Of a stretch of 64,000 nt of DNA, positions 29,890 through 55,617 are shown one piece after another. The notes under the pieces were generated by a model. That model was not told the DNA's origin. It made no database searches and was given only the letters and a program-made list of their open reading frames with translations. The DNA lies in sequence record KJ019103.1; one strand, given 5' to 3'. Both the position numbers and the translations under genes were made by a program. Positions within the stretch are counted from its first letter, which is position 1, and each line of letters opens with the position of its first letter.

Positions 29890-30643
29890 GGGTTATGTTG
29901 TTATTGCACTTGGCGATAAGTATGTTCAACTCGCCAAGAACTTTGAAGATACACTAAGACAAAACGGTGACAATCGTCCTGTTCATGTTGTCACTGAAGA
30001 CATGATTGATAAGGATAATGATAAGTATAGGGACTGTGATGTTCCCAACGAAAGGTATAACTGCTACCCCAAACTTCACTTCAATGAGTATGCGATATTT
30101 GATCATAGTATCCTAATCGATGCCGATGTTCTGTGCGTAGGTGATACCCAACACGTTTGGGATATGTGTAAAGAACAGGAACAGTTTATTCTTCACCGTG
30201 GGTGGGGACAAGTTACTAAATGGAATAGAGAACTACAGAAGAAAGTGTGGGACGTTCATGGGTTCGTACCTCCTCGCATTCACGGAGCTTTCTGTTATCT
30301 AAGGAAGGCAGATATCAATGAAGACTTCTTTGAATTTATCCAAAATAATGTGTGGTTTCAGTATACTGAATGGTGTACGGAAGATGTCAAAGCAAGACAT
30401 CACAGGTTAAGTAGATCAGACCAGGTGATATATGCTATTGGTTATGGTAAGTTTGATCTCATGCCCTGTCAGTTAATGGAAGTCCCTATTATGACTCATA
30501 TATTGACAGCGGCACACGTTAATCCTCCATACGATAGAATCACTTTTAAGGATCAAATTGGACCCGATTTACAACATCCAGTGGCATTTGCCCATATCGA
30601 ACAACTATTTCAGGAGAGCACCCCAGAAAGTTTTCTAAGGTGA
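29882..30643 (+). CDS. GT-A glycosyltransferase-like protein (GT8-like)
   Basis: SILIDADVL DxD motif; SRSDQ; C-terminal FAH. Confidence 0.6.
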   Translation: MTEGYVVIALGDKYVQLAKNFEDTLRQNGDNRPVHVVTEDMIDKDNDKYRDCDVPNERYNCYPKLHFNEYAIFDHSILIDADVLCVGDTQHVWDMCKEQEQFILHRGWGQVTKWNRELQKKVWDVHGFVPPRIHGAFCYLRKADINEDFFEFIQNNVWFQYTEWCTEDVKARHHRLSRSDQVIYAIGYGKFDLMPCQLMEVPIMTHILTAAHVNPPYDRITFKDQIGPDLQHPVAFAHIEQLFQESTPESFLR

Positions 30644-30697
30644 CAGTCCACAAACTGGCACACAGGGCTTGGCAACCCTCCCAAAAGGTGCTATACT
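30639..30697 (+). promoter_or_regulatory. element copy 2
   Basis: GGTGACAG..CTGGCACA, TTGGCA-17-TATACT. Confidence 0.9.
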
Positions 30698-30723
30698 ATC
30701 CAAGTAACCAAAGGAAATGATTT

Positions 30724-30945
30724 ATGAAACCAGCAGAAATTCTCTACGAAATGCAATCCATTCGTAAAGTCTGGCATAATAATAATTTCGTTATCAGTCC
30801 CGAACTAAACCGTCGCTATTGTGAACTTCTTAAACTCCGCCGTGAACGAGTTTCTCAATTCTATAAAGAGGGAAGGGTCGCTACAGGATCACAGACCCCC
30901 GACCTCAAAGCCCGAGAAGCAGCCAGACAAGCCGAGGTTGGTTGA
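30724..30945 (+). CDS. hypothetical protein
   Basis: downstream of element, AAGGA RBS. Confidence 0.75.
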   Translation: MKPAEILYEMQSIRKVWHNNNFVISPELNRRYCELLKLRRERVSQFYKEGRVATGSQTPDLKAREAARQAEVG

Positions 30946-30949
30946 GCCT

Positions 30950-31189
30950 ATGCAGGAACTTCTAGATACTTTCTATACAACTCCCTATGGTGATTTTGCC
31001 ATTAGAAAGACTCGTTTCGGTGTTCATACCTCATATGATCGAGAGGGAACCGATTTGGTGACAGGTTTAGAGTGGATTGACGTATTCACCACCACACCTT
31101 GTCACCTACAATGGGAGAAGGAGGGTTACAAACCCCCCGAAGGTACAGTTCAAGCAACCTATGATAGTGTAGTCTCTGGAAAACTCTAA
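30950..31189 (+). CDS. hypothetical protein
   Basis: start corrected to MQELLDTF. Confidence 0.7.
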   Translation: MQELLDTFYTTPYGDFAIRKTRFGVHTSYDREGTDLVTGLEWIDVFTTTPCHLQWEKEGYKPPEGTVQATYDSVVSGKL

Positions 31190-31536
31190 TGGAAGACCGA
31201 AAATCACAACTATACAGCATCATGTATGATGCTATCAGTGAACTAACTGAGCACGAGAGTGCTGAGGATATCTTTGACAATATTGTAGAGTATTTTGCTC
31301 TACGTGTTGAAGAAGCTCGTACTGAGGTTGATACTTACACGGATATGTTAAATGTATTCCGTAAAGACAACCCAGTGAGAGACGTTCCTAGTGCAGATCC
31401 ATACAAGAGAACTGAATGGGAACACGCATTTGGTGATATGGATGACATCAATCAAACATACATGCCATCAAACCAACACATCTGGAACGAGTTTCTTAAG
31501 AATATCAAATTCACGGACAATCAAGATACTAAATAA
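31189..31536 (+). CDS. hypothetical protein
   Basis: coupled ORF. Confidence 0.7.
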   Translation: MEDRKSQLYSIMYDAISELTEHESAEDIFDNIVEYFALRVEEARTEVDTYTDMLNVFRKDNPVRDVPSADPYKRTEWEHAFGDMDDINQTYMPSNQHIWNEFLKNIKFTDNQDTK

Positions 31537-31556
31537 ACACTATCAGGAGAAAAGAG

Positions 31557-31754
31557 ATGACTACTGACCCAAACGATAAGTACGCTAAGTTCAAAGTACC
31601 ATTTGGCACTAATGAACATCACGAAGATGATGAATGGGATCCTACAACTGAGGGTAAAATCTCTGATTGGCACAACCGACATCAAGATAAACTCTTAGAT
31701 GAGTTTTGTGACACTCACCCAGGCGCACCCCAATGTAAGGTGTTTGACGATTAG
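31557..31754 (+). CDS. cp12: small protein with CP12-like C-terminus
   Basis: C-terminal LLDEFCDTHPGAPQCKVFDD matches the CP12 CxxxPxxxxCxxYDD motif; TAAATA at 31530; AGGAG RBS. Confidence 0.8.
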   Translation: MTTDPNDKYAKFKVPFGTNEHHEDDEWDPTTEGKISDWHNRHQDKLLDEFCDTHPGAPQCKVFDD

Positions 31755-31802
31755 CAAAGTGGCACAAGACCACTTGACAGTACCACATTATTAGGTTACA
31801 GT
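31743..31802 (+). promoter_or_regulatory. element copy 3 (degenerate left arm)
   Basis: GTGGCACA, TTGACA-17-TACAGT. Confidence 0.65.
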
Positions 31803-31824
31803 ACATTTGTTCAAGAGGTTTCTC

Positions 31825-31995
31825 ATGACTACCGTTGTTGACTCAGAGGTTATCTTTGCTGACGCTTTCAGTGAAGATGGTATAGACTACGGAACTGGTT
31901 ATTATGTAACTAAGTTCTATAGCAATGGTATGACCGACCTATTTGGACCATACAATTTTGAGGAAGACGCCCTCAATCTTGCCACTGTTTATTGA
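31825..31995 (+). CDS. hypothetical protein
   Basis: start corrected to MTTVVD. Confidence 0.65.
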   Translation: MTTVVDSEVIFADAFSEDGIDYGTGYYVTKFYSNGMTDLFGPYNFEEDALNLATVY

Positions 31996-32011
31996 TTCCT
32001 TCCTTTTTATT

Positions 32012-32140
32012 ATGACTTTTGACACCTACGAAGACGAAAGTATCTTCACTATTCTCGGTATTGCCGAAGAAGGTGAAGAAGAAACAGAAAACCCCTATTC
32101 CACTGAGGATACTAAAACACTAAAAGAATATGGCTATTGA
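32012..32140 (+). CDS. small acidic protein
   Basis: MTFDTYEDE... Confidence 0.5.
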   Translation: MTFDTYEDESIFTILGIAEEGEEETENPYSTEDTKTLKEYGY

Positions 32141-32212
32141 TTTCTCGTTCATTCTAGGTTTAGTTTTCATTTGGTTGGGACTAAATATCCGTATAGTGAG
32201 AGGGGTGGAATA

Positions 32213-32500
32213 GTGGATTTCAGGGTAACAGTAAGAACACACACCGGGGCAGTTAGAGTTGTCGAGGTGAGCAACATGCCGAACGAGGAGGCAGCCAGAG
32301 CGGAAGCTGTTGGTATGACTTTCGGTAGGGTTCTGCAGGTTGAGTGTTTAGATGAGATCCCAGAACAATCCAAACCTAAAAAGAAAAGAGGACCAGTTCA
32401 AGAGATTGAACGAGAACTTAGACCAGGTGAAACCGAAACAATTGTAACAGGTTACAATAGCAACCCGTTAGCAGTGTTCTTCACTTTAGATGTTTTTTAG
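32213..32500 (+). CDS. hypothetical protein
   Basis: GTG start after GAGG; TAAATA at 32182. Confidence 0.6.
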   Translation: MDFRVTVRTHTGAVRVVEVSNMPNEEAARAEAVGMTFGRVLQVECLDEIPEQSKPKKKRGPVQEIERELRPGETETIVTGYNSNPLAVFFTLDVF

Positions 32501-32532
32501 GGGTTGACACACCCCTTTTTTTGTGCTATACT
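32500..32532 (+). promoter_or_regulatory. element copy 4 (no dyad; terminator hairpin plus promoter)
   Basis: GGGG-TTGACACA-CCCC-T7, TTGACA-17-TATACT. Confidence 0.8.
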
Positions 32533-32553
32533 TATACCAATCGCAGGAGATCA

Positions 32554-32820
32554 ATGGAAGAAAACATGTCGATTTCGACAGAACTTCTAACCAGCATAAA
32601 CGACGCCATGTATGTTGCCACTAACAACGCAGCTACTTACATGCACGGTGATAGAGGTGCTGACGCTATGTGTCTCCTAAACGAGTGGACTACAGAGGAT
32701 GGTGAATGTTTACTCACACAATATGCAAAGGGTGAAGTATGTGAGCACATGGGAACTTTCATGTTTATCAACCTAGAAGAAGAAACATGGGGTGAGTTTA
32801 TTATATCCGATGATGAGTAA
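32554..32820 (+). CDS. hypothetical protein
   Basis: AGGAGA RBS; start corrected. Confidence 0.7.
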   Translation: MEENMSISTELLTSINDAMYVATNNAATYMHGDRGADAMCLLNEWTTEDGECLLTQYAKGEVCEHMGTFMFINLEEETWGEFIISDDE

Positions 32821-32851
32821 ACTATATACTACAGACAATTATTCAGGTACA

Positions 32852-33067
32852 ATGAACCTAACTGAACATCAAAAGATTCAACTCTCACAATTTATTCATG
32901 AGTCGTTCTCTACATTCTATGAGGAGGAACTAAAGTTTCAAGTAGAAACTCTAAAAGATGATGACAAGTTGGATTGGACTTATACAATCACACCAAGAGA
33001 CTCAGGGGAGATTTATGATAAGGTTCAGGAATTATTCACACTAGAAAGGCGTGTGACAGTCGAATAA
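32852..33067 (+). CDS. hypothetical protein
   Basis: C-terminus RVTVE encoded by element copy 5. Confidence 0.65.
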   Translation: MNLTEHQKIQLSQFIHESFSTFYEEELKFQVETLKDDDKLDWTYTITPRDSGEIYDKVQELFTLERRVTVE

Positions 33068-33111
33068 GTGGCACAAGGGGGGTTGGCGAACCCCCTTTTT
33101 GCTGCCATAAT
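33052..33111 (+). promoter_or_regulatory. element copy 5 (with terminator)
   Basis: full dyad, TTGGCG-17-CATAAT. Confidence 0.9.
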
Positions 33112-33133
33112 ATACTCATACACACAAAGACCA

Positions 33134-33262
33134 ATGAACGTCCCCAACTGGCAGAAACACTCTAAGAAAGACCAGAAGGGTCGCGGGGTGAGCAAGGGTC
33201 AGATGAGAGCCCGCAAACAGGCTCTACGTGCCCTGAAGGCAAAGCTCCTTGTGACAGTCTAG
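33134..33262 (+). CDS. small basic protein
   Basis: MNVPNWQKHSKK..; ends LLVTV in copy 6. Confidence 0.7.
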   Translation: MNVPNWQKHSKKDQKGRGVSKGQMRARKQALRALKAKLLVTV

Positions 33263-33309
33263 GAAGTGGCACAAGCCCCCTAGGCAAGACCCTCAAACCC
33301 TGCTATACT
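33250..33309 (+). promoter_or_regulatory. element copy 6
   Basis: full dyad, TAGGCA-17-TATACT. Confidence 0.92.
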
Positions 33310-33332
33310 AAACACATACAAAGGAAACCACC

Positions 33333-33743
33333 ATGGCTCGTCACTCTGAAGTTCTCATCCAAGGCACCGAGGTTCCCGGTCTTCGCATGATCGTAACCGT
33401 TCCAGTCGATCACACCTGGGCATCAGAAACCGCCGAGAGCATCTATGGATTTGGTGGCAACACCCAATATATCTGGCGGAAGTCTTGGGAGACTAACCAA
33501 CCCGCCCCCCGTGGTGGTGGTTCCTCCTCCTCCTCCTCTGGCATGGGTCCTGGAGCTATCCTGATGGGGATGATTGGTCTTATCCTGGTTGCTGGTATTG
33601 GTTCCGCCTTCGAGGGTAACGACACCCCCTCAGCTCCTTCCTATGACGCTCCCGCACCTGTTGAGAGGTCATACGTTCCACAGGCACCCGCAGCCTCCTA
33701 TGACAATGGCCCTTGTCTCACCGCTAACTTCGAACCTTGTTAA
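33333..33743 (+). CDS. membrane-anchored hypothetical protein
   Basis: one TM segment, Pro/Ala-rich tail. Confidence 0.75.
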   Translation: MARHSEVLIQGTEVPGLRMIVTVPVDHTWASETAESIYGFGGNTQYIWRKSWETNQPAPRGGGSSSSSSGMGPGAILMGMIGLILVAGIGSAFEGNDTPSAPSYDAPAPVERSYVPQAPAASYDNGPCLTANFEPC

Positions 33744-33744
33744 T

Positions 33745-33918
33745 ATGAATGACTTTCGCCCCCCGCATCACACCACTACTAAAGAAGAGTGGGAGTTTAT
33801 TTTCCAAACACAGATACATAACTGCGCCCAACTAAAGAACACAGAACTCCAACGTTTTGTGTGTGTAGATAGTATGGGCAACAAAACTACCAAATATGTT
33901 ATAGAATACAATGACTGA
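33745..33918 (+). CDS. hypothetical protein
   Basis: start corrected to MNDFRPP. Confidence 0.6.
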   Translation: MNDFRPPHHTTTKEEWEFIFQTQIHNCAQLKNTELQRFVCVDSMGNKTTKYVIEYND

Positions 33919-34201
33919 AAAAGAAGTAGAGCTACACTTTGGGAGTGAGTATGAGGCTGGCATTGACTATGGGGATAGTGATGATTCAGACATTTTAGAC
34001 TACACCAAAGAAGTAAGTGTCACACTAACCCGTTCAGATTGGAATTGGTTTGTTACACTGATGTCAGACTCCGTTAATAAGATGGAGGCTGCAGTTTCTG
34101 CACAAGGTATGGATGCTGAGTCCTTCCTTTCTATTGATGTTCTTCGCACTATTCGTAATGAAATCGCAACTCAGAGTGGGCTCACTCAATACATTGATTG
34201 A
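33911..34201 (+). CDS. hypothetical protein
   Basis: coupled ORF. Confidence 0.7.
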   Translation: MTEKEVELHFGSEYEAGIDYGDSDDSDILDYTKEVSVTLTRSDWNWFVTLMSDSVNKMEAAVSAQGMDAESFLSIDVLRTIRNEIATQSGLTQYID

Positions 34202-34202
34202 G

Positions 34203-34475
34203 ATGCCAGTAGTGGCACCTAAAGGTTATCACTATGAGGCAGTAGAACACAAACAAAACGTAGTGGCTATTTGGTTATGTGGAGGTCCAACATACCTCTA
34301 CAAGATGGGAGAAACTGCTAGAACTATTCACTCCTTCTATAATATTAAGAAGAAAACCTGGTATGCACCTATCAACTGCAAGAAGCCAGGTAAGGAGGTA
34401 TCAGTGGATAAGATACGACCTTACACATCAATGCAACTGAACTACAACCCTCTGGAGATGCTACTATATGGCTAA
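34203..34475 (+). CDS. hypothetical protein
   Basis: start corrected to MPVVAPKGYHYE. Confidence 0.7.
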   Translation: MPVVAPKGYHYEAVEHKQNVVAIWLCGGPTYLYKMGETARTIHSFYNIKKKTWYAPINCKKPGKEVSVDKIRPYTSMQLNYNPLEMLLYG

Positions 34476-34510
34476 ATATATGTTATAATATCATAACATA
34501 TATCACGAAT

Positions 34511-34732
34511 ATGAAGTCCAAAGACCAATACAAGAAAGAGTTTCAATTCACACTGAATACATCCGATGATAAGATCGCGGAAGAGAATATTCTTCACGAT
34601 TTCGCCAGAGAGGTTTCAGTTATTGATGCTTTCCTACAAGGTGGGAAGGTATCACTAAAGGAGGCAAAACAGCGTATCAAAGATGTATACAAAGTGTGGA
34701 AGAACTCACTGAAAAACAACAACCAAATGTAA
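34511..34732 (+). CDS. hypothetical protein
   Basis: TAAATA at 34473 upstream. Confidence 0.7.
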   Translation: MKSKDQYKKEFQFTLNTSDDKIAEENILHDFAREVSVIDAFLQGGKVSLKEAKQRIKDVYKVWKNSLKNNNQM

Positions 34733-35119
34733 ATGGAACCTTTCCTGCTAATGGCTGTTGATGTAGCTGAATCTTCACCTTCTAGAAAGAAGGTTGGAGC
34801 TGTTCTAATGAATAAGAACAAAGTTATAGCAACAGCCACAAATCATGATTGTAAATCACACCCTCTACAAGCAAAGTGGGCAGAACGTGTGGGACTATCT
34901 GAAAAGATATATCTACACGCTGAAATGTCAGCAATGATCAAAGCTCGTGATGACTCAGACAAAATCGTTGTAGTTAGACTAGGAGGACATTCTGGTCACG
35001 AACTACGACAATCACGTCCTTGTCCTATATGTGAATCATACCTGAAATATTCGGGTATTGAACACGTATATTATTCCACTGGGAATAACAAATTTACCTA
35101 TGAATACTGGGGGAAATGA
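34733..35119 (+). CDS. zinc-dependent cytidine/deoxycytidylate deaminase-family protein
   Basis: LHAEMSAM (HxE) and RPCPIC (PCxxC). Confidence 0.85.
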   Translation: MEPFLLMAVDVAESSPSRKKVGAVLMNKNKVIATATNHDCKSHPLQAKWAERVGLSEKIYLHAEMSAMIKARDDSDKIVVVRLGGHSGHELRQSRPCPICESYLKYSGIEHVYYSTGNNKFTYEYWGK

Positions 35120-35316
35120 TGGAAACGTTCACAGCAACTTGTCCCAAAGACTACGACAGACATCACTATTCAGTTGTCAACAAAGACGGCACGAATAGGA
35201 TGTTTAGTAGTTGGGAACTCGCACAGAGTTACTGGTGGCATACTAACAAACTTGGTACACTATCACACATCGATGTGATAGACTATAAAGAACAATCAAG
35301 AGGTTTTGGAGCATGA
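35116..35316 (+). CDS. hypothetical protein
   Basis: ATGA-coupled ORF. Confidence 0.7.
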   Translation: MMETFTATCPKDYDRHHYSVVNKDGTNRMFSSWELAQSYWWHTNKLGTLSHIDVIDYKEQSRGFGA

Positions 35317-35531
35317 ACATGTTGGGTAAACAATCAGAGACTGGGATGAAAGTAACCTTTCTTGGTTATATCCCAGAACAAGTGAAGTTCGCAGGATCTG
35401 ACACACCAGACAAACTGAATACCACTACAACATATACCATTGAACAGGTAAAACGATTCAACTCGTATACCAAGATCAAACTAGTTGGTGATGATCTGTG
35501 GTATAATTCAGTTCACTTTAGAGTTACTTAA
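35313..35531 (+). CDS. hypothetical protein
   Basis: ATGA-coupled ORF. Confidence 0.7.
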   Translation: MNMLGKQSETGMKVTFLGYIPEQVKFAGSDTPDKLNTTTTYTIEQVKRFNSYTKIKLVGDDLWYNSVHFRVT

Positions 35532-35731
35532 TGGATAACATCTATGGGCGTGAGTATCACAGACATGCTGTTGATTATGCTCTGATGATAGGTGAGTTAG
35601 AAGGAACTTACACTCACCTGAAACGAATGTCTTACTTTGAGGATGCTGCTATCCTTGAAGAAATGAAGAAACGTTACTACAAGATCTACTTCCGTACCTT
35701 ACGTGAAGAAAGAGAAAAAGCAGAAAACTAA
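35531..35731 (+). CDS. hypothetical protein
   Basis: coupled ORF. Confidence 0.7.
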   Translation: MDNIYGREYHRHAVDYALMIGELEGTYTHLKRMSYFEDAAILEEMKKRYYKIYFRTLREEREKAEN

Positions 35732-35749
35732 CCTAATTGAGGATTTTGA

Positions 35750-36058
35750 ATGGTGTTAACTTGGACCGACGAAGAGAAAGTAAACCTAACCCGTGCAGAG
35801 GTTAGTATTCATGGGGAGAATATCACTCCAGATAAACTAGACAACAAAACTCTACCAACAGATATTCATGTCATTGAATATGAGATGGAAGGTGTAACTT
35901 ACTACGACGCGGTTCGTGCCTACAAAATGGTTAGCATCTTTGATGTATATCACGATAAGCTAAAAGGTGGTGGTAAAGTTGTTAGAATCACCAATGGGTA
36001 TGGTAGCATTAGACCTAACCTGTGGAACAACAATAAGAGTGAGAAAGGTGATGAGTGA
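35750..36058 (+). CDS. hypothetical protein
   Basis: GAGG RBS. Confidence 0.75.
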   Translation: MVLTWTDEEKVNLTRAEVSIHGENITPDKLDNKTLPTDIHVIEYEMEGVTYYDAVRAYKMVSIFDVYHDKLKGGGKVVRITNGYGSIRPNLWNNNKSEKGDE

Positions 36059-36230
36059 GAGGAAGTCAGAGGACTGGATTAGTGAGTGGAAAGGAATGAA
36101 TGATGAGTTCATTGAAGAAGACACTATGTTTAGAGTTCAGATTCCCTCTGCTGAAAAGACACAAGAATGGATGGATAGAGAACCATTAATCTTAAAAGTA
36201 GATCACTCGAAGTATTATTTTGATGACTGA
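36051..36230 (+). CDS. hypothetical protein
   Basis: start corrected to MSERKSED. Confidence 0.6.
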   Translation: MSERKSEDWISEWKGMNDEFIEEDTMFRVQIPSAEKTQEWMDREPLILKVDHSKYYFDD

Positions 36231-36426
36231 AGAAGATCCAATGATCAACTGGAAACAGAAGATGATGAAACATTGCACCCACGATTGGGAAAAGCAACTA
36301 TTACGTGAAGGTGCCACATCATCTGTGACAGCAATGGGTATAATGTCACTAAAGAAACGATACAAAAGGATTATGGGTATTGATGATGATCCAAAGCCAC
36401 CTGTAGTTCAGTACGCCTCCTATTGA
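36220..36426 (+). CDS. hypothetical protein
   Basis: coupled ORF. Confidence 0.65.
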   Translation: MMTEEDPMINWKQKMMKHCTHDWEKQLLREGATSSVTAMGIMSLKKRYKRIMGIDDDPKPPVVQYASY

Positions 36427-36432
36427 TACTTT

Positions 36433-36837
36433 ATGAATAAGAACAAGCACAATGAGATTGTAGGATCTACAGTAGAAAGATCAGACGAGAGGATCAAAGA
36501 CACTGGGGAGGTATTCACTCCCCTAGAACTGTGTCGTGAGATGGTTAGTGAGATCCCCCTATCTACCCTGCAAGATCCTAACTCCACCTTTTTGGATAAT
36601 TCTGCTGGCTGTGGCAACTTCCTCATCGCCCTCAGGGACCGGCTATTGGAATATCATGAGTTATCACATATCGTAGACAATATGATCTACTGTGTGGAAC
36701 TTATGGAGGACAACCATAGGGAAATATGTAAGACAATGGGTGTATCTACCGATCATCCACACTATGTGAGGGCAAATGCACTGGAATACGATTATAGCTT
36801 CGGCAACCCCGTTGGGTTGGAGAGTTTCTTCGTGTGA
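36433..36837 (+). CDS. short N6-adenine DNA methyltransferase-like protein
   Basis: TGEVFTP and FLDNSAGCGNFL (motif I); no NPPY/DPPY motif IV. Confidence 0.7.
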   Translation: MNKNKHNEIVGSTVERSDERIKDTGEVFTPLELCREMVSEIPLSTLQDPNSTFLDNSAGCGNFLIALRDRLLEYHELSHIVDNMIYCVELMEDNHREICKTMGVSTDHPHYVRANALEYDYSFGNPVGLESFFV

Positions 36838-36892
36838 CAGTTGAATAAGTGACACAAGGGGGGTAGGCACCCCCCTTTTTTTGTGCCATAAT
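36833..36892 (+). promoter_or_regulatory. element copy 7 (with terminator)
   Basis: TGTGACAG..GTGACACA, TAGGCA-17-CATAAT. Confidence 0.9.
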
Positions 36893-48580: not shown

Positions 48581-48622
48581 TACACTAAGTAACACTCACC
48601 AAACACACTAACTAACAACATC

Positions 48623-49009
48623 ATGGGCACACGTTCACGCATCGGTTATCAACTTCCAACTGGCAATATCGTTTCTGTGTATCATCATTGGGATTCCTAT
48701 CCTACGTGGTTGGGTAAGAGACTCACCAAAAACTATATCACTGATAAAACTATCACCGAACTGATTGATGGTGGTGATATGTCATCTATCGAGAGTAATC
48801 GCGACTGGGATCTTAATGAAGTTGCCCCACATGTTCAGTATTATTCACAACGTGGTGACACTGGATGTGAACCTCTCCTTCACAAAAACCAGAGAGAGTT
48901 TATCAAAACCACTGTAGACTGTTGGGGTGAGTATTCCTACCTATACAGGAATGGACGTTGGTTCTGTTATGATGAGAAGGGTAAGTCTGTTTCACTGAAG
49001 AACTTATGA
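48623..49009 (+). CDS. conserved phage hypothetical protein
   Basis: MGTRSRIG...YHHWDSYP.WLG motif common in phages. Confidence 0.75.
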   Translation: MGTRSRIGYQLPTGNIVSVYHHWDSYPTWLGKRLTKNYITDKTITELIDGGDMSSIESNRDWDLNEVAPHVQYYSQRGDTGCEPLLHKNQREFIKTTVDCWGEYSYLYRNGRWFCYDEKGKSVSLKNL

Positions 49010-49341
49010 TTAGCAAACTGTTCTCACTATCTCTTGTTCTTGCGGGTTCTATCTTACCCGCACAGGCATACCCCAATATCGTATATTGGGAACGCATTGA
49101 TTGTAACCTCATCACCGAAACTATCCAGAAGTGTGATAGGTACAATGGGCAGAATGGAGTTTTCATCGAATCATACTATCTGGACATATACACAAACGAA
49201 CATAGCTTTATAGATCCACGAGGACCTGAAATAGTTGTACCTGATGTAATAGAAGAAGAGACACTAGATGATATCCAACCTGATGTAGAATACAACGAAC
49301 CGATAACAACAACAGACCCACTCCTGAATGATAGTTACTGA
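49006..49341 (+). CDS. exported hypothetical protein
   Basis: signal peptide ending AQA; two Cys. Confidence 0.65.
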   Translation: MISKLFSLSLVLAGSILPAQAYPNIVYWERIDCNLITETIQKCDRYNGQNGVFIESYYLDIYTNEHSFIDPRGPEIVVPDVIEEETLDDIQPDVEYNEPITTTDPLLNDSY

Positions 49342-49498
49342 TTTTTCCATATTCCTGTCGGCAACCACCTCCTACCATACCCCCTGCCAAACCGATATGG
49401 TTTTTTCACCTTTCCCGTCTAGTGGCTCACTGGTGTCTCAGCGAGGCACAAATGAGATTTCACCCCCATACCCTCAGACAGAGCAAAACTCATAACCA
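49341..49498. repeat. 158-bp non-coding element, copy B
   Basis: collinear with 39734-39891. Confidence 0.7.
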
Positions 49499-49557
49499 TG
49501 TGACAGTTGGATTAGTGGCACACGAAAGCCCGCAAACCCCTCAGGGGGTGCTATACT
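49499..49557 (+). promoter_or_regulatory. element copy 24 (CCGCA class)
   Basis: full dyad, CCCGCA-17-TATACT. Confidence 0.9.
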
Positions 49558-49579
49558 AAACCCATACACAACAAAACCA

Positions 49580-49936
49580 ATGATCTACTCTATCACTCAC
49601 CAGGAGACTGGCATTACGTATTCAGTTAGCACTGAAGATATTCGTAAAGTTGCTAACATCCTCCCAATGAACTCTGAGGAGTTGGCTGACATGATGACAG
49701 GTCTGAATTGTGACTCATATGCAGATATGGCAGAAGAGTATATTGAAGAAGTTGCGGATATGTATGATGATGTGACACTGGCAACTGATAAGTTTATGAG
49801 TAGCACTGATGAAAGAGCACAAACAACGTTCGCCTACTATCGTATCATGAACTGTGATAACTCTGATGAAGTGACTACACAATATTGGCGTGATGACGCT
49901 ATGGCTATGATCACTGACTACAATGATCGCAAATGA
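49580..49936 (+). CDS. acidic hypothetical protein
   Basis: after copy 24. Confidence 0.7.
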   Translation: MIYSITHQETGITYSVSTEDIRKVANILPMNSEELADMMTGLNCDSYADMAEEYIEEVADMYDDVTLATDKFMSSTDERAQTTFAYYRIMNCDNSDEVTTQYWRDDAMAMITDYNDRK

Positions 49937-50244
49937 AACGCTACGGACTTTATTGGCTGAGAGCTATAACCCTAGGGGCTGGTCTAAACTTTGTTTTGAC
50001 TGGTTATCTCATGGGTCACCAAAAGTGGAAGTTTCAACATGCAGCTCCACTCTCAGCGTTTATCTGTGTGAATCTATCGTATGTGGCGGATCGTCTTATC
50101 TTTGGTGATAAGAAGGAACCTGAAGATTTAGATCCAGATACTATTGTTATATCAACCCCACACTGTTGCCCCGTATGTTCAGAGTATCCTTGCACTTGTG
50201 ACAGTTGGGAAAGTGGCACAACCCCCCTAGGCAACACCCTCTGA
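49933..50244 (+). CDS. membrane protein with Cys cluster
   Basis: two TM segments; HCCPVCSEYPCTC; runs into copy 25. Confidence 0.6.
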   Translation: MKRYGLYWLRAITLGAGLNFVLTGYLMGHQKWKFQHAAPLSAFICVNLSYVADRLIFGDKKEPEDLDPDTIVISTPHCCPVCSEYPCTCDSWESGTTPLGNTL

Positions 50245-50256
50245 ACCTGCTATACT
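50197..50256 (+). promoter_or_regulatory. element copy 25
   Basis: full dyad, TAGGCA-17-TATACT. Confidence 0.92.
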
Positions 50257-50280
50257 AAACACATACCAAAGGAACCAACC

Positions 50281-50478
50281 ATGAAAGTCTCTCAGGAAGT
50301 TTTCAAGAGTTACATTCAGATACTGGATGAAAACACACAAACATCATGGGATATCCTAAATGTTTTGAATGATATTGTTAGAGGTGACTGGGATAACTCA
50401 GTCCAGTATTGTTTGGAAAATCCATCAGGCGACCCTATGGATGATTTCAACTACGCAGGCAGTCGCCACCACTATTGA
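50281..50478 (+). CDS. hypothetical protein
   Basis: after copy 25. Confidence 0.7.
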   Translation: MKVSQEVFKSYIQILDENTQTSWDILNVLNDIVRGDWDNSVQYCLENPSGDPMDDFNYAGSRHHY

Positions 50479-50507
50479 TCACTAACTCACCACACTAACT
50501 AACAACT

Positions 50508-50792
50508 ATGACACGCACTCCAATGACAGTCACCCTCAAGCGTAGCGACTGGGAATGTTATACAGACACCCCCGATACTATCATCGAAACTATCAACTCA
50601 TACTTCTCTTATGTGTTATCAACTAAAGATAACGCGTTTGATGCACAGTCTGAGATATTCAAGTTTCTGAATATGTTTAGTGAGTTTGGGTTTATGGATA
50701 GTGAGTGCCTAGAATGTGCAACTAGAGTCATCAACAGATATTTCGATTCATACCTCTCCCGCTGGAGTCAGGTGGGTGATGTGACAGTCTAG
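50508..50792 (+). CDS. hypothetical protein
   Basis: ends GDVTV in copy 26. Confidence 0.7.
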   Translation: MTRTPMTVTLKRSDWECYTDTPDTIIETINSYFSYVLSTKDNAFDAQSEIFKFLNMFSEFGFMDSECLECATRVINRYFDSYLSRWSQVGDVTV

Positions 50793-50838
50793 GAACTGGC
50801 ACACGCTTCTCCGCAAACCCCTCAGGGGGTGCTATACT
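50780..50838 (+). promoter_or_regulatory. element copy 26 (CCGCA class)
   Basis: full dyad, TCCGCA-17-TATACT. Confidence 0.92.
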
Positions 50839-50860
50839 ATATTCATACCAAAGGAACCAA

Positions 50861-51178
50861 ATGAATTTCAGAACACTAGCACTCACCACCACCCTGGCTC
50901 TCTCCACTGTCCTAGGTGGTTTGGCTCCTGAAGCTAAGTCAGCTGACTTTTGTGACAACATCCCCGGCAACTCGGGATACGTTTGTGTTACCATGGGTCT
51001 CTGGTTCGACTTGGTTGAGGCAGACATACCCGCCTTTGGTGGTAAAGAGTCATTACACATCACCTGTGACAATGGCTGGTCATATCGATCTAATGGTAAC
51101 TGGAACAAAGACGCCGCTTCCCTTGTGGCTAAGGAATACTGTGAAGGTGCTGGCTGGAACAGCCACTCCGAGGTGTGA
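50861..51178 (+). CDS. exported four-Cys protein (paralog of 47174)
   Basis: signal peptide; four Cys; stop in copy 27. Confidence 0.75.
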   Translation: MNFRTLALTTTLALSTVLGGLAPEAKSADFCDNIPGNSGYVCVTMGLWFDLVEADIPAFGGKESLHITCDNGWSYRSNGNWNKDAASLVAKEYCEGAGWNSHSEV

Positions 51179-51233
51179 CAGTCTAGGAAGTGGCACAAGC
51201 CCCCTAGGCAAGACCCCTCGGGTCTGCTATACT
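51174..51233 (+). promoter_or_regulatory. element copy 27
   Basis: full dyad, TAGGCA-17-TATACT. Confidence 0.92.
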
Positions 51234-51258
51234 ATATTCATACCAAACAAGGAAACCA

Positions 51259-51525
51259 ATGTTCCCACACCTCCACATCTCTGAATCAAACCTCGGACCT
51301 CACACCTCCACGTTTTTCAAAGTATCATCACAACCACAAGATGAGTGGCAGAATGGCATTTTCCATAACTCACCTTATGGTATCTTTCACCTTCATTCTG
51401 AGAAAGGTGTTTATAAGTTGGAACTATCTTCCTCAGGTTTGAATACACCTAAGTTCAGGAAGTGTAAGTGTGAAGATGAACTTACCGCACTCACTAAGAT
51501 TCGTCAGTGGATGGATAAGTTCTGA
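51259..51525 (+). CDS. hypothetical protein
   Basis: after copy 27, AGGA RBS. Confidence 0.75.
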   Translation: MFPHLHISESNLGPHTSTFFKVSSQPQDEWQNGIFHNSPYGIFHLHSEKGVYKLELSSSGLNTPKFRKCKCEDELTALTKIRQWMDKF

Positions 51526-51560
51526 TATTATCTAACACAAACCACTCACAACAAACTATC

Positions 51561-51734
51561 ATGAACCGACTAGAACTACTGACCCAACGTGAACAACTGA
51601 TGGAGAGGATTGACTCTATCTGTGATGAATTCTTTTATAAGAACTATAATGGAGATACATCAGAAGCAGATGAATTAGTTCGTATTCTATGTGATGCTGT
51701 TTGTGAAACCATAGACCCAGCGGGCATGGTGTGA
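51561..51734 (+). CDS. small hypothetical protein (missing from ORF track)
   Basis: MNRLELLTQREQLMERIDSIC...LVRILCDAVC; stop in copy 28. Confidence 0.7.
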   Translation: MNRLELLTQREQLMERIDSICDEFFYKNYNGDTSEADELVRILCDAVCETIDPAGMV

Positions 51735-51789
51735 CAGTTGAGGAAGTGGCACAAGCCCCCTAGGCAAACCCCTCCATACCTGCTATACT
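51730..51789 (+). promoter_or_regulatory. element copy 28
   Basis: full dyad, TAGGCA-17-TATACT. Confidence 0.92.
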
Positions 51790-51814
51790 ATATTCATACC
51801 AAAGGAAACCGACC

Positions 51815-52078
51815 ATGTTCCAAGTCTGTACCGAAGACGCTCTAGATCACCGCTACACAATTGATGAGTTTGAGACACTGGAAGAAGCCCAATCTTGTTA
51901 TAACGAGTGTGTGAAGGTTGGAGCTGAGGGTTATGAGATTTCGGTTGAGTTAGAGGAAATCATTGGCGATCATGATGATTACGTTTCCATCGAGTTCACC
52001 GAGTGGTTTACACAAGAGAGTTGGGAGGAAGCTCATCCATGGAATGAGAAGGAAGGAGTATGGGAAAACATAGACTGA
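51815..52078 (+). CDS. acidic hypothetical protein
   Basis: single-gene unit between copies 28 and 29. Confidence 0.7.
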   Translation: MFQVCTEDALDHRYTIDEFETLEEAQSCYNECVKVGAEGYEISVELEEIIGDHDDYVSIEFTEWFTQESWEEAHPWNEKEGVWENID

Positions 52079-52138
52079 TGTGACAGTTGGAGAAGTGGCA
52101 CAAGCCCCCTAGGCAAACCCCTCCATACCTGATATACC
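52079..52138 (+). promoter_or_regulatory. element copy 29 (damaged -10)
   Basis: full dyad, TAGGCA-17-TATACC, apparent 11-bp deletion. Confidence 0.85.
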
Positions 52139-52154
52139 AAACAAAGGAAACCAA

Positions 52155-52496
52155 ATGACCACCACCCAAACCAAAACCGAGTTCCTCACCGAGGCAATGA
52201 TCGAACAGGTGAACAACCTCTGGAAGGTTTATAACGTGGAGTCAGGTCACACCATCACCCCACTTCTTAAGTATGAAGTGGCTAAGAAGTACATCAAGGT
52301 CTATCGTTTAGACGTTGTGAATGGTGAGATTCGTGACGGTCGTTCAGTGTTTATGTTTATCGATAAGGAGACTGGAGCGGTATACAAGCCAGCCAGTTGG
52401 AGAGCACCCGCTAAGGGTATTCGCTTCTACATTGAGTCGTTGGCTGAGAATCCTGAGCTGGTTGATCAGTATGGTAGTTTCCTCTACCGTCGCTGA
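52155..52496 (+). CDS. conserved phage hypothetical protein
   Basis: FIDKETGAVYKPASWRAPAKGIRF motif common in phages. Confidence 0.8.
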   Translation: MTTTQTKTEFLTEAMIEQVNNLWKVYNVESGHTITPLLKYEVAKKYIKVYRLDVVNGEIRDGRSVFMFIDKETGAVYKPASWRAPAKGIRFYIESLAENPELVDQYGSFLYRR

Positions 52497-52556
52497 TGTG
52501 ACAGCCACCAAGGTGGCACAGGGGGGCTAGGCAGCTCCCCTTCTTTATGCTATACT
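52497..52556 (+). promoter_or_regulatory. element copy 30 (with terminator)
   Basis: full dyad, TAGGCA-17-TATACT. Confidence 0.92.
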
Positions 52557-52578
52557 ATATTCATACCAAAGGAACCCG

Positions 52579-53832
52579 ATGACCCTGACTCTCCGCCCCC
52601 ACCAACTAGAAGCACTTCAGGTGATGGCTGAGACCCGTCTTGGCCAGATATTAGTTCCAACTGGAGGCGGCAAGACATTGATTGCCATCATGGACGTTGT
52701 GAGGACTCTAGAGAACGCAGGAACCCCTCAGACTATCGTTGTGGTAGCTCCTAGAATATTGTTATCGCAACAGCTCTGTAGTGAGTATATGGAGGTTCTG
52801 AGCGATAGGTTCGCTAATGTTATCCCCGCTCATATCCATTCAGGTCATACACCCCACTTCTCTACCACTAACATTCAGAAGATTCATCTCTTTGAGAAGA
52901 TGATGGATACCGCCAACCTTCACCGTATATACTTCACAACATACAACTCACTTCCTAGACTCGCAGAAGCAGGTGTGAGTGTTGATACTATCTATTTTGA
53001 TGAAGCACATAACTCGACTCGTAATGACTTCTATCCCGCTACCAAGTATTTCTCACAGACCGCTAGTCGTTGTTATTTCTTTACAGCAACTCCCCGTCAC
53101 TCGGTAACATCCAAGAGACACGGAATGAACGAGTCTGATGTATATGGTCAGGTCATCTACAATGTTCCTGCCCCTACACTTGTTCAGGGTGGGTTTATCA
53201 TCCCCCCACAGGTTCGTGTTAAAGAGATGGAGTTTGTAGCTAAACATGAGCTCATCTCACAACGTGATACAAACCACCTCATCTCTTGTATTGATGACAA
53301 CCACACGAGCAAAGTTCTAGTTTGTGCTAAGTCAGTCAAACAGATCATGCGTATGTTTAGTGAGACCGATATCAGCCAACAACTTGATGATCGTGGTTTC
53401 TCCTATATGTACATCTCAGCTAAGACTGGTGGTGTTATCAATGGTAAGAAAGTATCACGCACTATGTTCTTCGATACTCTAAACCAGTGGGGTAAGGATA
53501 ACAACAAGAAGTTCATTGTTCTTCATCATTCTATTCTCTCTGAGGGTATCAACGTGAGTGGTTTAGAGTCAGCTATCTTTCTTCGTACTATGGATCATAT
53601 CACTATCTCCCAAACGATTGGAAGAGTAATAAGATTACACAAGGATGATGCTAAAGCTATGAGAGATGGTTCGATTCGCCCCGGTGATCTTAACTCCTAT
53701 ACTAAGTCCTTTGGTTTGTGTATTGTTCCAGTTTATTCTAAAACACAACAAACAGTTGCCAAGTCTCTTCAGGCAGTTGTTAATACCGTCTTTGTGGAAG
53801 GTGAAGCAGCAACCACAGTTGTGAGGCGTTAG
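52579..53832 (+). CDS. superfamily 2 (DExH) helicase
   Basis: PTGGGKT, FDEAH, TAT, LSEGINV, QTIGRVIR. Confidence 0.9.
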   Translation: MTLTLRPHQLEALQVMAETRLGQILVPTGGGKTLIAIMDVVRTLENAGTPQTIVVVAPRILLSQQLCSEYMEVLSDRFANVIPAHIHSGHTPHFSTTNIQKIHLFEKMMDTANLHRIYFTTYNSLPRLAEAGVSVDTIYFDEAHNSTRNDFYPATKYFSQTASRCYFFTATPRHSVTSKRHGMNESDVYGQVIYNVPAPTLVQGGFIIPPQVRVKEMEFVAKHELISQRDTNHLISCIDDNHTSKVLVCAKSVKQIMRMFSETDISQQLDDRGFSYMYISAKTGGVINGKKVSRTMFFDTLNQWGKDNNKKFIVLHHSILSEGINVSGLESAIFLRTMDHITISQTIGRVIRLHKDDAKAMRDGSIRPGDLNSYTKSFGLCIVPVYSKTQQTVAKSLQAVVNTVFVEGEAATTVVRR

Positions 53833-53833
53833 T

Positions 53834-53962
53834 ATGAATTATCAAAACCAAGCTCTTGTGATACTTCTAGGTCTAATGGTTATAGCTGGTATTAACGTAA
53901 TTCACTATGAACAACAATGGCAATGTAGGATGCATCAAACCTATTGTTTTGTTTCTGAATAA
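53834..53962 (+). CDS. small membrane protein (missing from ORF track)
   Basis: MNYQNQALVILLGLMVIAGINVIHYE... Confidence 0.45.
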   Translation: MNYQNQALVILLGLMVIAGINVIHYEQQWQCRMHQTYCFVSE

Positions 53963-54651
53963 TACCATAGGTAACCCTTCCAACGCGAACCCCATTTGAT
54001 AGAAGTACAAATACCCTTTCCACGATCCTCTTCATTAAAGGATCTCATCGCATCACTAATAGAGTCAAAGACGGGAGTAACATGACCAGTCTTATGAACT
54101 CCATAGACTTGTTTCTTATTCTTAGCGTGTTTATGAATCCACCATTTGTAACCATATGCCGAACCCTCTCTTGTGATACTTCTCCTGATATTTGATGGCC
54201 TACCATTCACAAACTCAGCGGCAGCAACCCAACCGTGAAAGGTTTTGATCTTACCCGTTTCCAAGCACCTACACTTGATCACGTTCTTATCATGTTTCTT
54301 AGGTTTCTTCTTTCGTTGATAACCCCAACGCCTATCCCCATTATGATATGACTCTTTATTATTCAGCTTCCTACCAGTATGTTCTAACACCAAATTGTTA
54401 TATTCAGGTTGATACTTATTCATCCAATATTCCACTCTCTCTTTAACCTTATTATCATTCACTTCTTCTAGTATGCGTATAGTGAAGTCATCGGAGTTAT
54501 AGTAACCCAACGCATTCGACAGAGGAGTATTTTCCTCCTTATGATTTTCCAATATCCCAGCCCAAACTTTATTCAGGGGAAGCGTATCATAACCGATGTA
54601 TTTGTGAGAGGTTTGTCTATTCAAGATGATGTAGATGTTTGTGATGCTCAC
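53941..54651 (-). mobile_element. free-standing GIY-YIG homing endonuclease gene
   Basis: N-terminal NIY...KYIG and conserved E (ILEE); C-terminal repeated NUMOD1/HTH-like units; only confidently called minus-strand gene in the accessory region. Confidence 0.75.
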
Positions 54652-54751
54652 GGGAAATAGTCTCTATTCTGGTTGTATATATAAACATTATCTTTTTTTA
54701 TCACATGTGTTTGTTTATCTCCCTATTGGATGTTATAATAGAAAGGAAGAG

Positions 54752-54865
54752 ATGAAGATGAATAACCAATGGAATTACCTAAGAGAAGGTAACACTAATC
54801 CCCTATACAATAACCCAATAGAAAGTGATCTAATAGAAGGTAATCATATAGAGGAAGGTGAATAG
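54752..54865 (+). CDS. possible short ORF
   Basis: TGTTATAAT upstream, AAGGAAGAG RBS; repetitive, may be non-coding. Confidence 0.3.
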   Translation: MKMNNQWNYLREGNTNPLYNNPIESDLIEGNHIEEGE

Positions 54866-55000
54866 AAAGCCCTATACAATACCCCTTATAATAGTATCAT
54901 ATAACGAGGTCTTTACAGCTCACTAAGCTCCTCCTAAACTCCACTGCCCGTTGCATATAAAGATCCATAGAAAGGTCTCTGCCCGTTGCTACCTTAGCCC

Positions 55001-55029
55001 ACCCTACCACGGGATTCCATTTTTGCCAA
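55001..55029 (-). promoter_or_regulatory. minus-strand sigma70-like promoter facing the GIY-YIG gene
   Basis: reverse complement reads TTGGCA-17-TAGGGT with extended TG. Confidence 0.5.
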
Positions 55030-55064
55030 GGGATCTCCGAAAATCTTAATATTTCCGAGACACC

Positions 55065-55124
55065 CCAGACACCCACGGAACTGGCACAAACCCCCTAGAC
55101 AAACCCCCCGAAATGGCATATACT
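55065..55124 (+). promoter_or_regulatory. element copy 31
   Basis: CCAGACAC..CTGGCACA, TAGACA-17-TATACT. Confidence 0.88.
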
Positions 55125-55150
55125 ATATTCATACACAAGGGAACCGACCC

Positions 55151-55384
55151 ATGGAATTCATCCAAACTGACTACCCCGCTAACATGGCTCCCAATGTTAT
55201 GGAGAGGAACTATGGTCGGGGTATCATCCTGACTCAGGTCAATGAGGATGGTGTCATTCCATTCTCAGTATTCAATTTCAAAAAAGAGGATTGGAACTGG
55301 GGAGCTGACTACTACATGACCGAGCATAACTTTTATACACTAGAAGAGGCAGAGGCGGTAGTGACTCAGCTCGTAGCCAGCTGA
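55151..55384 (+). CDS. hypothetical protein
   Basis: after copy 31. Confidence 0.7.
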   Translation: MEFIQTDYPANMAPNVMERNYGRGIILTQVNEDGVIPFSVFNFKKEDWNWGADYYMTEHNFYTLEEAEAVVTQLVAS

Positions 55385-55432
55385 ACCACTGTCACATGGG
55401 GGCTAGGCACAGCCCCCTCTATACCCTATACT
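55373..55432 (+). promoter_or_regulatory. element copy 32
   Basis: GTAGCCAG..CTGTCACA, TAGGCA-17-TATACT. Confidence 0.88.
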
Positions 55433-55458
55433 ATATTCATACACAAGGGAACACCCCC

Positions 55459-55617
55459 ATGACCAAAGCAACTCAGAGACCTTCCACCCAGAGCCGTTAC
55501 ACCAGTCAGGTAGCCATGGATCGTAAGGCAGCAGCACTCCAGAGGGCAGAGGAGCGTCGCCTCACGGGTTCTGCCGACGTGGATCAGGTGAACCGCCTCT
55601 ACACTGTGACACTCTGA
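55459..55617 (+). CDS. small hypothetical protein
   Basis: start corrected to MTKATQR; ends YTVTL in copy 33. Confidence 0.65.
   Translation: MTKATQRPSTQSRYTSQVAMDRKAAALQRAEERRLTGSADVDQVNRLYTVTL

Follow-up and report, generated by a model that had tools for sequence, protein, structure and literature searches.

Why do so many unrelated small genes of one phage end inside, or directly against, copies of the same short palindrome? The question is raised by the first 64 kb of sequence record KJ019103.1 (64,000 nucleotides, the whole stretch of DNA that we analyzed and hereafter call the window; 100% identity to the record), which comes from Synechococcus phage ACG-2014f isolate Syn7803US44, a T4-like cyanomyovirus (Kyanoviridae, Atlauavirus). 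The palindromes lie in a hyperplastic region that extends from a tail-fiber-like gene (end, 27752) to the baseplate gene gp25 (start, 58919) and holds ∼85 small plus-strand coding sequences (CDSs), almost all annotated as hypothetical. A first-pass annotation of the sequence had proposed that genes are captured or exchanged here by crossover at the palindrome, in the manner of an integron array. We consider it likely that each repeat is a self-contained early-expression cassette that overlaps the preceding gene as a consequence of tight gene packing, that is exchanged by homology, and whose dyad would act as an operator.

The palindrome is one part of a larger repeat. The pattern TGTGACA-N10-TGGCACA occurs 26 times with at most one mismatch, against 0.03 occurrences expected, and a profile of the complete unit, built from 24 copies, recovered 32 units in the window, all on the plus strand between 27760 and 55675 (Table 1), with none on the minus strand and none in the structural genes flanking the region on either side. 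Four additional copies lie elsewhere in the genome, leaving 32 of the ∼36 genome copies in the 28-kb region between tail fiber and gp25. One of the outlying copies (positions 114252 to 114322 of the record) precedes cobS, with a peptidase gene ending flush against it, and another (171717 to 171783) precedes psbA, with a tail-fiber gene ending in its loop.

The units follow one order, in which a 24-bp quasi-palindromic dyad at about −66 to −43 is followed by a −35-like hexamer, an extended −10 element, a leader with a ribosome-binding site, and an ATG. The dyad ends 29 to 30 nt before the −10 element, with the −35-like hexamer inside that stretch, and a sigma-70-type scan called the promoter in nearly all units (TTGGCA or TAGGCA, a 17-nt spacer, and TATACT, usually preceded by TG). 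The leader is conserved and carries an AAGGA-type ribosome-binding site, and in most units the ATG lies 77 to 93 nt from dyad position 1, commonly 82 to 87, the two long-leader units having 107 and 121. In 13 of the 32 units the −35 hexamer is enclosed by a hairpin in which a G-run pairs with a C-run (−13.8 to −16 kcal/mol), followed in 6 to 8 of them by a T-run. Because of the T-run behind it, this hairpin resembles an intrinsic terminator and should end transcription arriving from upstream; terminator-like hairpins were called by the scan at 42985 and 52520 (52520 to 52541). The units without a hairpin have a C-run core or a third core type, and the variants of arm, core, and leader are found in all combinations.

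The upstream stop codon falls between −9 and +16 of dyad position 1 in 24 of the 32 units. In seven units the stop is the TGA at dyad positions 3 to 5 (CDS ends at 30643, 36837, 40455, 47647, 47951, 51178, and 51734), as the first-pass annotation had seen, and in four it is flush against the arm, at 42961, 52078, and 52496, also reported there, and at 37454, which had been missed. The stop lies 2 to 9 nt before the arm in three units, at +3 in one, in the loop (+12 to +16) in nine, and at +28 to +64 in five, while three units have no gene nearby upstream. The repeat-encoded tails earlier attributed to genes that read through the left arm (ends at 33067, 33262, 43297, 50792, 55617, 47124, and 44466) are as described. 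The pattern extends to independent IMG/VR contigs, where an exact-pattern scan gave mostly single chance hits and became informative once loci were rescored with the unit profile: 50 of 58 units had an upstream open frame ending between −9 and +17, versus 23% at random positions.

Gene spacing offers an account of this overlap. The median distance between neighboring genes is −0.5 nt (range, −17 to 97) where no unit intervenes and 79.5 nt where one does. The latter value is below the 82- to 87-nt length of the unit itself, so the unit fills the entire intergenic space and overlaps the preceding gene by a few bases. We therefore attribute the coincidence of stop and dyad to the packing of genes with zero spacing in this region. 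The three reading frames into the dyad are used about equally (roughly 7:8:11). The idea that the dyad is a portable three-frame stop was considered separately and rejected: all frames are closed by +16 in only 3 of the 32 window units, and only 11 of 125 distinct dyads close all frames within the 24-mer.

Homologues that lack the element provide a view of whether the dyad creates gene ends or covers them, a comparison that had been suggested together with the capture hypothesis and whose outcome was mixed. Genes with flush stops (36918 to 37454 and 52155 to 52496) have the same C-terminus as homologues without a unit behind them in cyanophage S-CAM7 and in IMG/VR, as does the gene at 41190 to 41357, whose stop lies 9 nt before the arm. 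Genes that stop at the arm TGA (47727 to 47951 and 36433 to 36837) match the length of their homologues to within one residue and differ in the final one or two residues, and the junction between 47727-47951 and its unit is conserved in S-CAM7. Altered tails were found only in genes that read through (33134 to 33262, 44272 to 44466, 50523 to 50792, and 51561 to 51734), and the native tails that they replaced are of similar length or shorter. The arm thus covers the natural end of a gene, and a new end made by fusion is not the usual case. In one gene (CDS 49933-50244) the dyad (50197 to 50220) is read in frame 1 as the C-terminal segment of the protein, and the S-CAM7 homologue ends in a similar peptide encoded by dyad-like sequence (28280 to 28306 of that genome).

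The phage collection contains ∼45 sister genomes of 94 to 99% identity, all from one water sample, and we aligned the region from seven of them (L002 to L008) to the window. The unit-bearing region showed 30 distinct structural differences, of which 16 had both ends in units, 4 had one, and 10 had neither, counting a window end as in a unit when it fell within −10 to +93 of the unit origin; units make up 11.9% of the region (binomial P of about 4e-8 per event). Counted singly, 36 of 60 window breakpoints lay in units (P of about 9e-19 per breakpoint). Deletions from unit to unit left 49 to 84 bp of overlapping homology at the junction, as in L003, which lacks 36907 to 37906 with an overlap of 74 bp; in this slot L004 carries a 3.4-kb segment (methyltransferase plus helicase) and L007 one of 3.1 kb. 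The gene at 41190 to 41357 is deleted between two units in L005, L007, and L008, and L006 carries a 2.8-kb deletion between units 40451 and 43285. Cassettes are inserted at units 46646, 52079, and 55605, and insertion duplicates a unit (46729/46660). The ORF (open reading frame) at 50861 to 51178 is replaced by two different ORFs, from the ATG to 4 to 7 nt before the next dyad (e.g., 50861 to 51167), so that exchange of whole ORFs, which the first-pass annotation had anticipated, is borne out.

One could suppose that the cassettes are only promoters and that indels cluster there since intergenic DNA tolerates breakpoints, with the homology between units being irrelevant. In favor of this account, selection removes breakpoints inside genes, some events have only short microhomology, and 10 events are without a unit; these 10 include the insertion of an HNH homing endonuclease near 39729 (L006), the loss of the gene at 41809 to 42318 at a 10-bp microhomology, and the precise presence or absence of unit 42962 itself. 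Yet unit-less gene borders are commoner than borders with units (48 versus 28) and carry few events, the unit-by-unit events share their 49 to 84 bp and yield clean chimeric units, insertions duplicate the unit, and unit segment variants are reassorted. We regard this account as unlikely.

The location of the crossover within the unit was mapped by three-way comparison of four chimeric units with their two parental copies. The switch lies in the −10 region in L003, between the −10 element and the leader (+60 to +66) in L007, between the −35 hexamer and the ribosome-binding site in L005, and inside the right arm (about positions 17 to 25) in L006, and the edges of homology are spread across the whole unit. 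From the four different switch points, together with the reassorted segments, we conclude that exchange is homologous and can occur anywhere in the 70- to 90-nt repeat, with no fixed site. The proposal that genes are exchanged at the dyad therefore holds insofar as junctions and breakpoints fall in units and fails insofar as crossover is not confined to the dyad and a third of the events are free of units. Annotated homologous-recombination genes of the T4 type (UvsX, UvsY, UvsW, gp46, and gp47) are present in the record.

These observations bear directly on the integron-like alternative, in which the dyad would be an attC-type site, folded as a single strand, and an unrecognized site-specific recombinase would capture and excise promoter-ORF cassettes. 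Every cassette border does carry an imperfect palindrome, all of them directly oriented, the end of one indel falls between arm positions 5 and 6, one deletion crossover lies inside the right arm, and three different insertions begin right after the dyad of unit 55605. Against this, only one of the four mapped crossovers falls within the dyad, a promoter comes with every cassette, and folding of the dyad is weak, with no compensatory changes; the same dyad also precedes core phage genes such as psbA and, as described below, non-mobile cyanobacterial small RNA (sRNA) genes. The annotation of positions 1 to 213000 of the 218-kb record includes no integrase and no site-specific recombinase of another kind, which extends to nearly the whole genome what had been noticed for the window. 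A Pfam search of the 20 largest proteins of the region found a 2OG-Fe(II) oxygenase, a methyltransferase, several domains of unknown function, and a trace of NUMOD1, with no recombinase and no obvious DNA-binding regulator among them. The integron comparison made at first reading is thus not upheld, and we judge a dedicated recombinase acting at the dyad to be highly improbable.

What, then, is the dyad? Folded as single strands with RNA parameters, dyads typically reach −3 to −6.6 kcal/mol, no better than shuffled sequences (z-scores of −1.7 to +0.1), the exception being the fully paired copy at 39892 (−10.9 kcal/mol), which has no abutting gene. Pair statistics over 125 distinct dyads from the ACG-2014f set, S-CAM7, and IMG/VR show no covariation at positions 5/20 (A·G, 79; C-G, 27; A-T, 6; C·T, 6), and positions 8/17 are alike, not complementary (G·G, 59, and C·C, 30, versus G-C, 20, and C-G, 8; P = 7e-8), although this likeness may in part come from subfamilies spread by copying. 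Of the two arms, S-CAM7 retains the promoter-proximal one, and the distal, coding one decays. A hairpin as the main function of the dyad was rejected on the weak folds, the absence of covariation at 5/20, and the anti-complementary 8/17. Such features are consistent with a pair of half-sites recognized in duplex DNA, and the dyad is probably a binding site for a dimeric transcription factor and not a recombination site.

The same data speak to a role in RNA, in which the upstream message would have a dyad hairpin at its 3′ end that affects stability, processing, or translation termination, as a counterpart of the stem-loop found in the early-promoter cassettes of T4-type phages (see below). 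In most copies the dyad does coincide exactly with the upstream stop codon, it would be transcribed within the upstream message, and the fully paired copy at 39892 folds at −10.9 kcal/mol. The typical fold energies, the A·G mismatch retained in 79 of the 125 dyads, and the preference for G·G and C·C over pairs at 8/17 all argue the other way, as do two features of the promoters that we consider next, namely, the fixed distance of 29 to 30 nt to the −10 element in phage and host loci, which points to a function in the downstream promoter, and the placement of the host dyad upstream of the sRNA start. We consider an RNA element quite improbable.

Cyanobacterial genomes contain the same dyad at the promoters of an sRNA family. 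When 185,579 prokaryotic genomes were scanned for exact matches to the phage-type dyad (18 specified bases), 24 hits were obtained, about the number expected by chance. Of these 24, 4 lie directly upstream of a gene of the Rfam family Cyano-1 (RF01701), two of them in Nodularia genomes, one in a Cyanothece, and one in an uncultured cyanobacterium. We take Cyano-1 to be a Yfr2-family sRNA, partly on the strength of its conserved 5′ motif. A metagenome scan for a relaxed dyad followed 36 to 48 nt later by the Cyano-1 5′ motif added nine loci, all of them Cyano-1 at the gathering score; an Rfam scan of the 64-kb window returned zero families at that score. At all 13 Cyano-1 loci the dyad lies upstream of the sRNA start and ends 29 to 30 nt before a −10-like hexamer, a spacing identical to that in the phage, so that TGTGNCA-N10-TGNCACA, with its half-sites, its 10-nt spacing, and its distance to the −10 element, is common to the phage units and the host loci. 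This identical distance argues for a function of the dyad in the downstream promoter. The host dyad differs from that of the phage in being present as one copy per sRNA gene, in its weak −35 element, and in having no link to recombination. To judge from the sequences, the phage dyad resembles an upstream promoter element conserved in cyanobacteria, one that the phage would use on its early promoters. Our literature search found no paper describing an upstream dyad of yfr2 promoters in Nodularia, Cyanothece, or uncultured cyanobacteria, and none tying ACG-2014f, cyanophage early promoters, or promoter-early stem-loops (PeSLs) to the dyad.

A regulatory palindrome is already described for yfr2 promoters of marine picocyanobacteria. 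This element, CGRE1, is reported to be bound by the GntR/PlmA-family regulator PMM1637, and the yfr2 genes linked to it are induced by high light and nitrogen starvation (Lambrecht 2018, PMC6191309). As described there, CGRE1 starts at −55 to −57 and has flanks of GTTG ... CAAC and a GTG-CAC-type center (PMC6191309). By that description, CGRE1 and the phage dyad are alike in being palindromes of ∼21 to 24 nt just upstream of or overlapping the −35 element and in their link to the Yfr2 family, and the right arm of the phage dyad holds GTGGCAC, which resembles the CGRE1 center and occupies the position expected for it. The phage dyad differs from CGRE1 as described in starting near −66 and in having no GTTG ... 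CAAC flanks, and the two are not obviously the same motif. One possible, still tentative, synthesis is that the phage copied the Yfr2 operator/promoter of its hosts onto ∼35 early genes plus psbA and cobS, that a host stress regulator (with PlmA/GntR as a candidate) gates the early program, and that the cassette doubles as exchange homology that keeps regulation intact.

For the cassette as a self-contained expression unit, we propose the following mechanism. A hairpin with a T-run would end transcription coming from upstream, and the dyad would be bound by a dimeric transcription factor at the promoter. With the cassette filling the whole intergenic space, its first bases would overlap the last codons of the preceding gene, which would end at the first stop met in frame, whether the left-arm TGA, a stop in the loop, or its own flush stop. 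Some 32 direct repeats of 70 to 90 nt, one every 0.2 to 3 kb, could be paired by the homologous-recombination proteins UvsX, UvsY, UvsW, gp46, and gp47, within one genome or between coinfecting relatives, and the outcome would be deletion, duplication, insertion, or swapping of the genes in between. A gene moved in this way would keep a promoter in front of it and an insulated neighbor behind it.

Several points weigh against this reading. Promoter strength, early timing, and termination are all deduced from nucleotide sequence. The breakpoint analysis covers 7 of the ∼45 sister genomes, structural events shared by descent were merged by coordinates only, and 10 of the 30 events proceeded without units. 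The right-arm switch in L006 and the indel joining 36426 to 37459, which ends in the left arm between positions 5 and 6, past the TGA, with ∼5 nt of similarity, leave room for a dyad-specific contribution to exchange. The 13 dyad-bearing Cyano-1 loci have 34 to 47% G+C and include Nodularia and Cyanothece, and none of the 13 is from marine Synechococcus, the host group of the phage. The palindrome reported for yfr2 promoters of marine picocyanobacteria, CGRE1, is described differently from the phage dyad (PMC6191309).

Table 1. Cassette units of the window. Stops are those of the upstream gene, relative to dyad position 1 unless given as coordinates; L numbers denote sister genomes.
Feature	Coordinates	Strand	Profile score	Upstream stop	Further details
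Array of 32 promoter cassettes	27760..55688	+			Profile search
Unit 1, terminator-type core (G-run hairpin, then T-run)	27760..27851	+	56.6	−7	−10 is TATAAT
Unit 2	30639..30723	+	50.2	Arm TGA (CDS 29882-30643)	
Degenerate unit, poor left arm, own −35/−10	31743..31824	+		In loop (CDS 31557-31754)	Pattern search only; below profile threshold
Promoter-only unit (hairpin, T-run, −10, no dyad)	32500..32553	+	17.2	At unit start (CDS 32213-32500)	Profile positions 28-60
Unit, terminator-type core	33052..33133	+	65.5	+16, in loop	Upstream CDS reads through left arm
Unit, C-run core, no hairpin	33250..33332	+	62.6	+13	Tail differs from that of homologues elsewhere, length similar
Unit, terminator-type core	36833..36917	+	58.8	Arm TGA	Left border of variable slot; junctions at +57 (L007), +72 (L004), +74 (L003)
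Unit, terminator-type core	37455..37540	+	51.4	Flush, 37454	1.03-kb indel ends between arm positions 5 and 6
Unit, hairpin core without T-run	37904..37985	+	55.1	+15	Right border of variable slot; junctions at +2, +14, +66
Unit, different −10, long G-rich leader	38725..38844	+	39.7	+64	CDS 38654-38788 reads through
Unit, long leader, no abutting gene	39892..39997	+	26.0	−171 (nearest)	Only copy with fully complementary 7-nt arm cores; folds at −10.9 kcal/mol
Unit, C-run core	40451..40535	+	68.3	Arm TGA	Partner in L006 2.8-kb deletion; right-arm crossover
Unit, degenerate left arm	40767..40855	+	42.3	+12	Profile positions 9-71
Unit, third core type	41110..41189	+	59.5	−2	Recombined with unit 41367 in L005, L007, L008
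Unit, C-run core	41367..41450	+	66.4	−9	Second in-frame TGA flush against arm
Unit, terminator-type core	42962..43045	+	67.4	Flush, 42961	Wholly missing from L005, L007, L008, where flanking genes overlap instead
Unit, C-run core	43285..43366	+	65.4	+13	Right partner of L006 2.8-kb deletion
Unit	44433..44516	+	53.6	+34	Upstream CDS reads through whole dyad to TAG in −35 hexamer
Unit, hairpin core	46646..46732	+	66.6	+3	632-bp cassette insertion in L007, 70 bp of unit duplicated
Unit, degenerate left arm	46865..46947	+	54.2	+15	Profile positions 9-71
Unit	47091..47173	+	58.9	+34	Read-through
Unit, third core type	47643..47726	+	60.0	Arm TGA	
Unit, hairpin core	47947..48031	+	60.8	Arm TGA	Gene-unit junction kept in S-CAM7
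Unit, third core type, no abutting gene	49499..49579	+	53.8		Unit and next gene missing from L005, L006, L008
Unit, dyad within coding sequence of CDS 49933-50244, frame 1	50197..50280	+	63.5	+48	
Unit, third core type	50780..50860	+	60.6	+13	Left border of two ORF replacements
Unit, C-run core	51174..51258	+	68.3	Arm TGA	Right border of ORF replacements, at −4 and −7
Unit, C-run core, best-scoring copy	51730..51814	+	72.4	Arm TGA	Dyad folds at −5 kcal/mol
Unit, shortened −10/leader	52079..52154	+	51.4	Flush, 52078	303- and 425-bp cassettes inserted in relatives
Unit preceding helicase gene	52497..52578	+	59.9	Flush, 52496	Terminator-like hairpin 52520-52541
Unit, degenerate left arm, no abutting gene	55065..55150	+	32.3		
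Unit, hairpin core	55373..55458	+	41.2	+12	
Final unit of array	55605..55688	+	48.4	+13	Three different insertions in relatives start at +23, just past dyad

Some variants of the repeat stand apart. The units at 38725 to 38844 and 39892 to 39997, with one at 34370 to 34470 of L005, form a subfamily with a different −10 element and a G-rich leader of 50 to 60 nt that may form a hairpin before the start codon. In S-CAM7 (L129) a second repeated element lies behind several gene ends (28300 to 28330, 20220 to 20245, 27136 to 27160, and 26025 to 26045); its right arm is of the type AGTGTCCAC, not AGTGGCACA, and it may represent a sister family of the dyad.

Recognition of the cassettes explains oddities of annotation, among them C-terminal tails encoded by the repeat and start codons placed within the dyad. 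The CDS at 40452 to 40778 is annotated with a GTG start inside the dyad, which is probably a mis-call; the unit supplies an ATG at 40536, and L002 annotates a 243-nt version. An unannotated 53-codon ORF (55689 to 55850) begins at the ATG supplied by unit 55605, a unit that in relatives is followed directly after its dyad by insertions of 0.5 to 0.9 kb. The cargo of the slot at 36905 to 37918 differs among phages (a DNA methyltransferase plus a helicase in L004 and two large ORFs in L007), and S-CAM7 has genes annotated as restriction-modification subunits elsewhere in its region; the slot cargo may serve defense or counter-defense.

Other features of the genome lie outside this argument. The sole minus-strand gene of the array (53941 to 54552) is annotated as a “cox1-i7 protein” or HNH endonuclease, has a trace of NUMOD1, and ranges in annotated length from 483 to 711 nt among relatives. 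Upstream of the tail-fiber genes, a structural gene contains a long run of 9-nt-periodic GGT-rich repeats (14164 to 16125; Gly-X-Y, collagen-like). Beyond the window, a gene at 139540 to 140232 is annotated as a sigma-70-family RpoD subunit, and gp43 (DNA polymerase) and gp45 (sliding clamp) are each annotated as two separate CDSs.

The finding is one of cyanophage cassettes of the PeSL type with an operator-like dyad, and its one new lead is the putative operator shared with yfr2-type promoters. The match between the phage and yfr2 dyads offers a testable connection between early cyanophage transcription and host physiology, and it bears on the regulation of Yfr2 outside the marine picocyanobacteria. 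The ∼45 sister genomes from one water sample make an unusually good natural data set for the cassette-driven variable gene content of ocean phages. The idea of the mobile regulatory cassette, known from coliphages and vibriophages, would come to include marine cyanomyoviruses, for which an earlier look at S-PM2 had judged PeSL-type arrays unlikely.

The array shares with integrons a direct series of short imperfect palindromes at the borders of cassettes that carry variable small genes of unknown function. It differs from them in the absence of an integrase from the annotation (positions 1 to 213000) and from the Pfam matches of the 20 largest proteins of the region; in the −35 and −10 elements of each cassette, integron cassettes being promoterless and served by one common promoter; in crossovers without a fixed point, with exchange that looks homology driven; and in a 24-bp palindrome of weak fold that typically forms no stable single-stranded hairpin.

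The closest known system is instead that of the PeSLs, mobile regulatory cassettes of the T4-type phages RB49/phi1, T4/PST, and KVP40/nt-1 (Arbiol 2010, PMC2839356; Comeau 2014, PMC4122927). Both are repeated intergenic cassettes of 50 to 90 nt that share one orientation, lie in hyperplastic regions of T4-like myoviruses, and flank small genes of unknown function. Both combine a sigma-70-type early promoter (predicted from sequence in the phage studied here) with a ribosome-binding site, a start codon, and a stem-loop, which in the present phage is a possible terminator found in some copies. In both, cassettes form the end points of indels and replacements that distinguish close relatives, with crossovers at several cassette positions. 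The present cassettes differ in host group, which is cyanobacteria; in S-PM2, the one cyanophage examined earlier, a dense PeSL array was reported to be absent (PMC4503421). Upstream of the −35 element, where PeSLs carry an AT-rich tract, the present cassettes have the dyad followed by a G- or C-run, and, unlike PeSLs, they overlap the preceding coding sequence. The stem-loop of a PeSL precedes the −35 element, whereas the G/C hairpin of the phage encloses it and is present in only 13 of 32 copies, 6 to 8 of them with a T-run.

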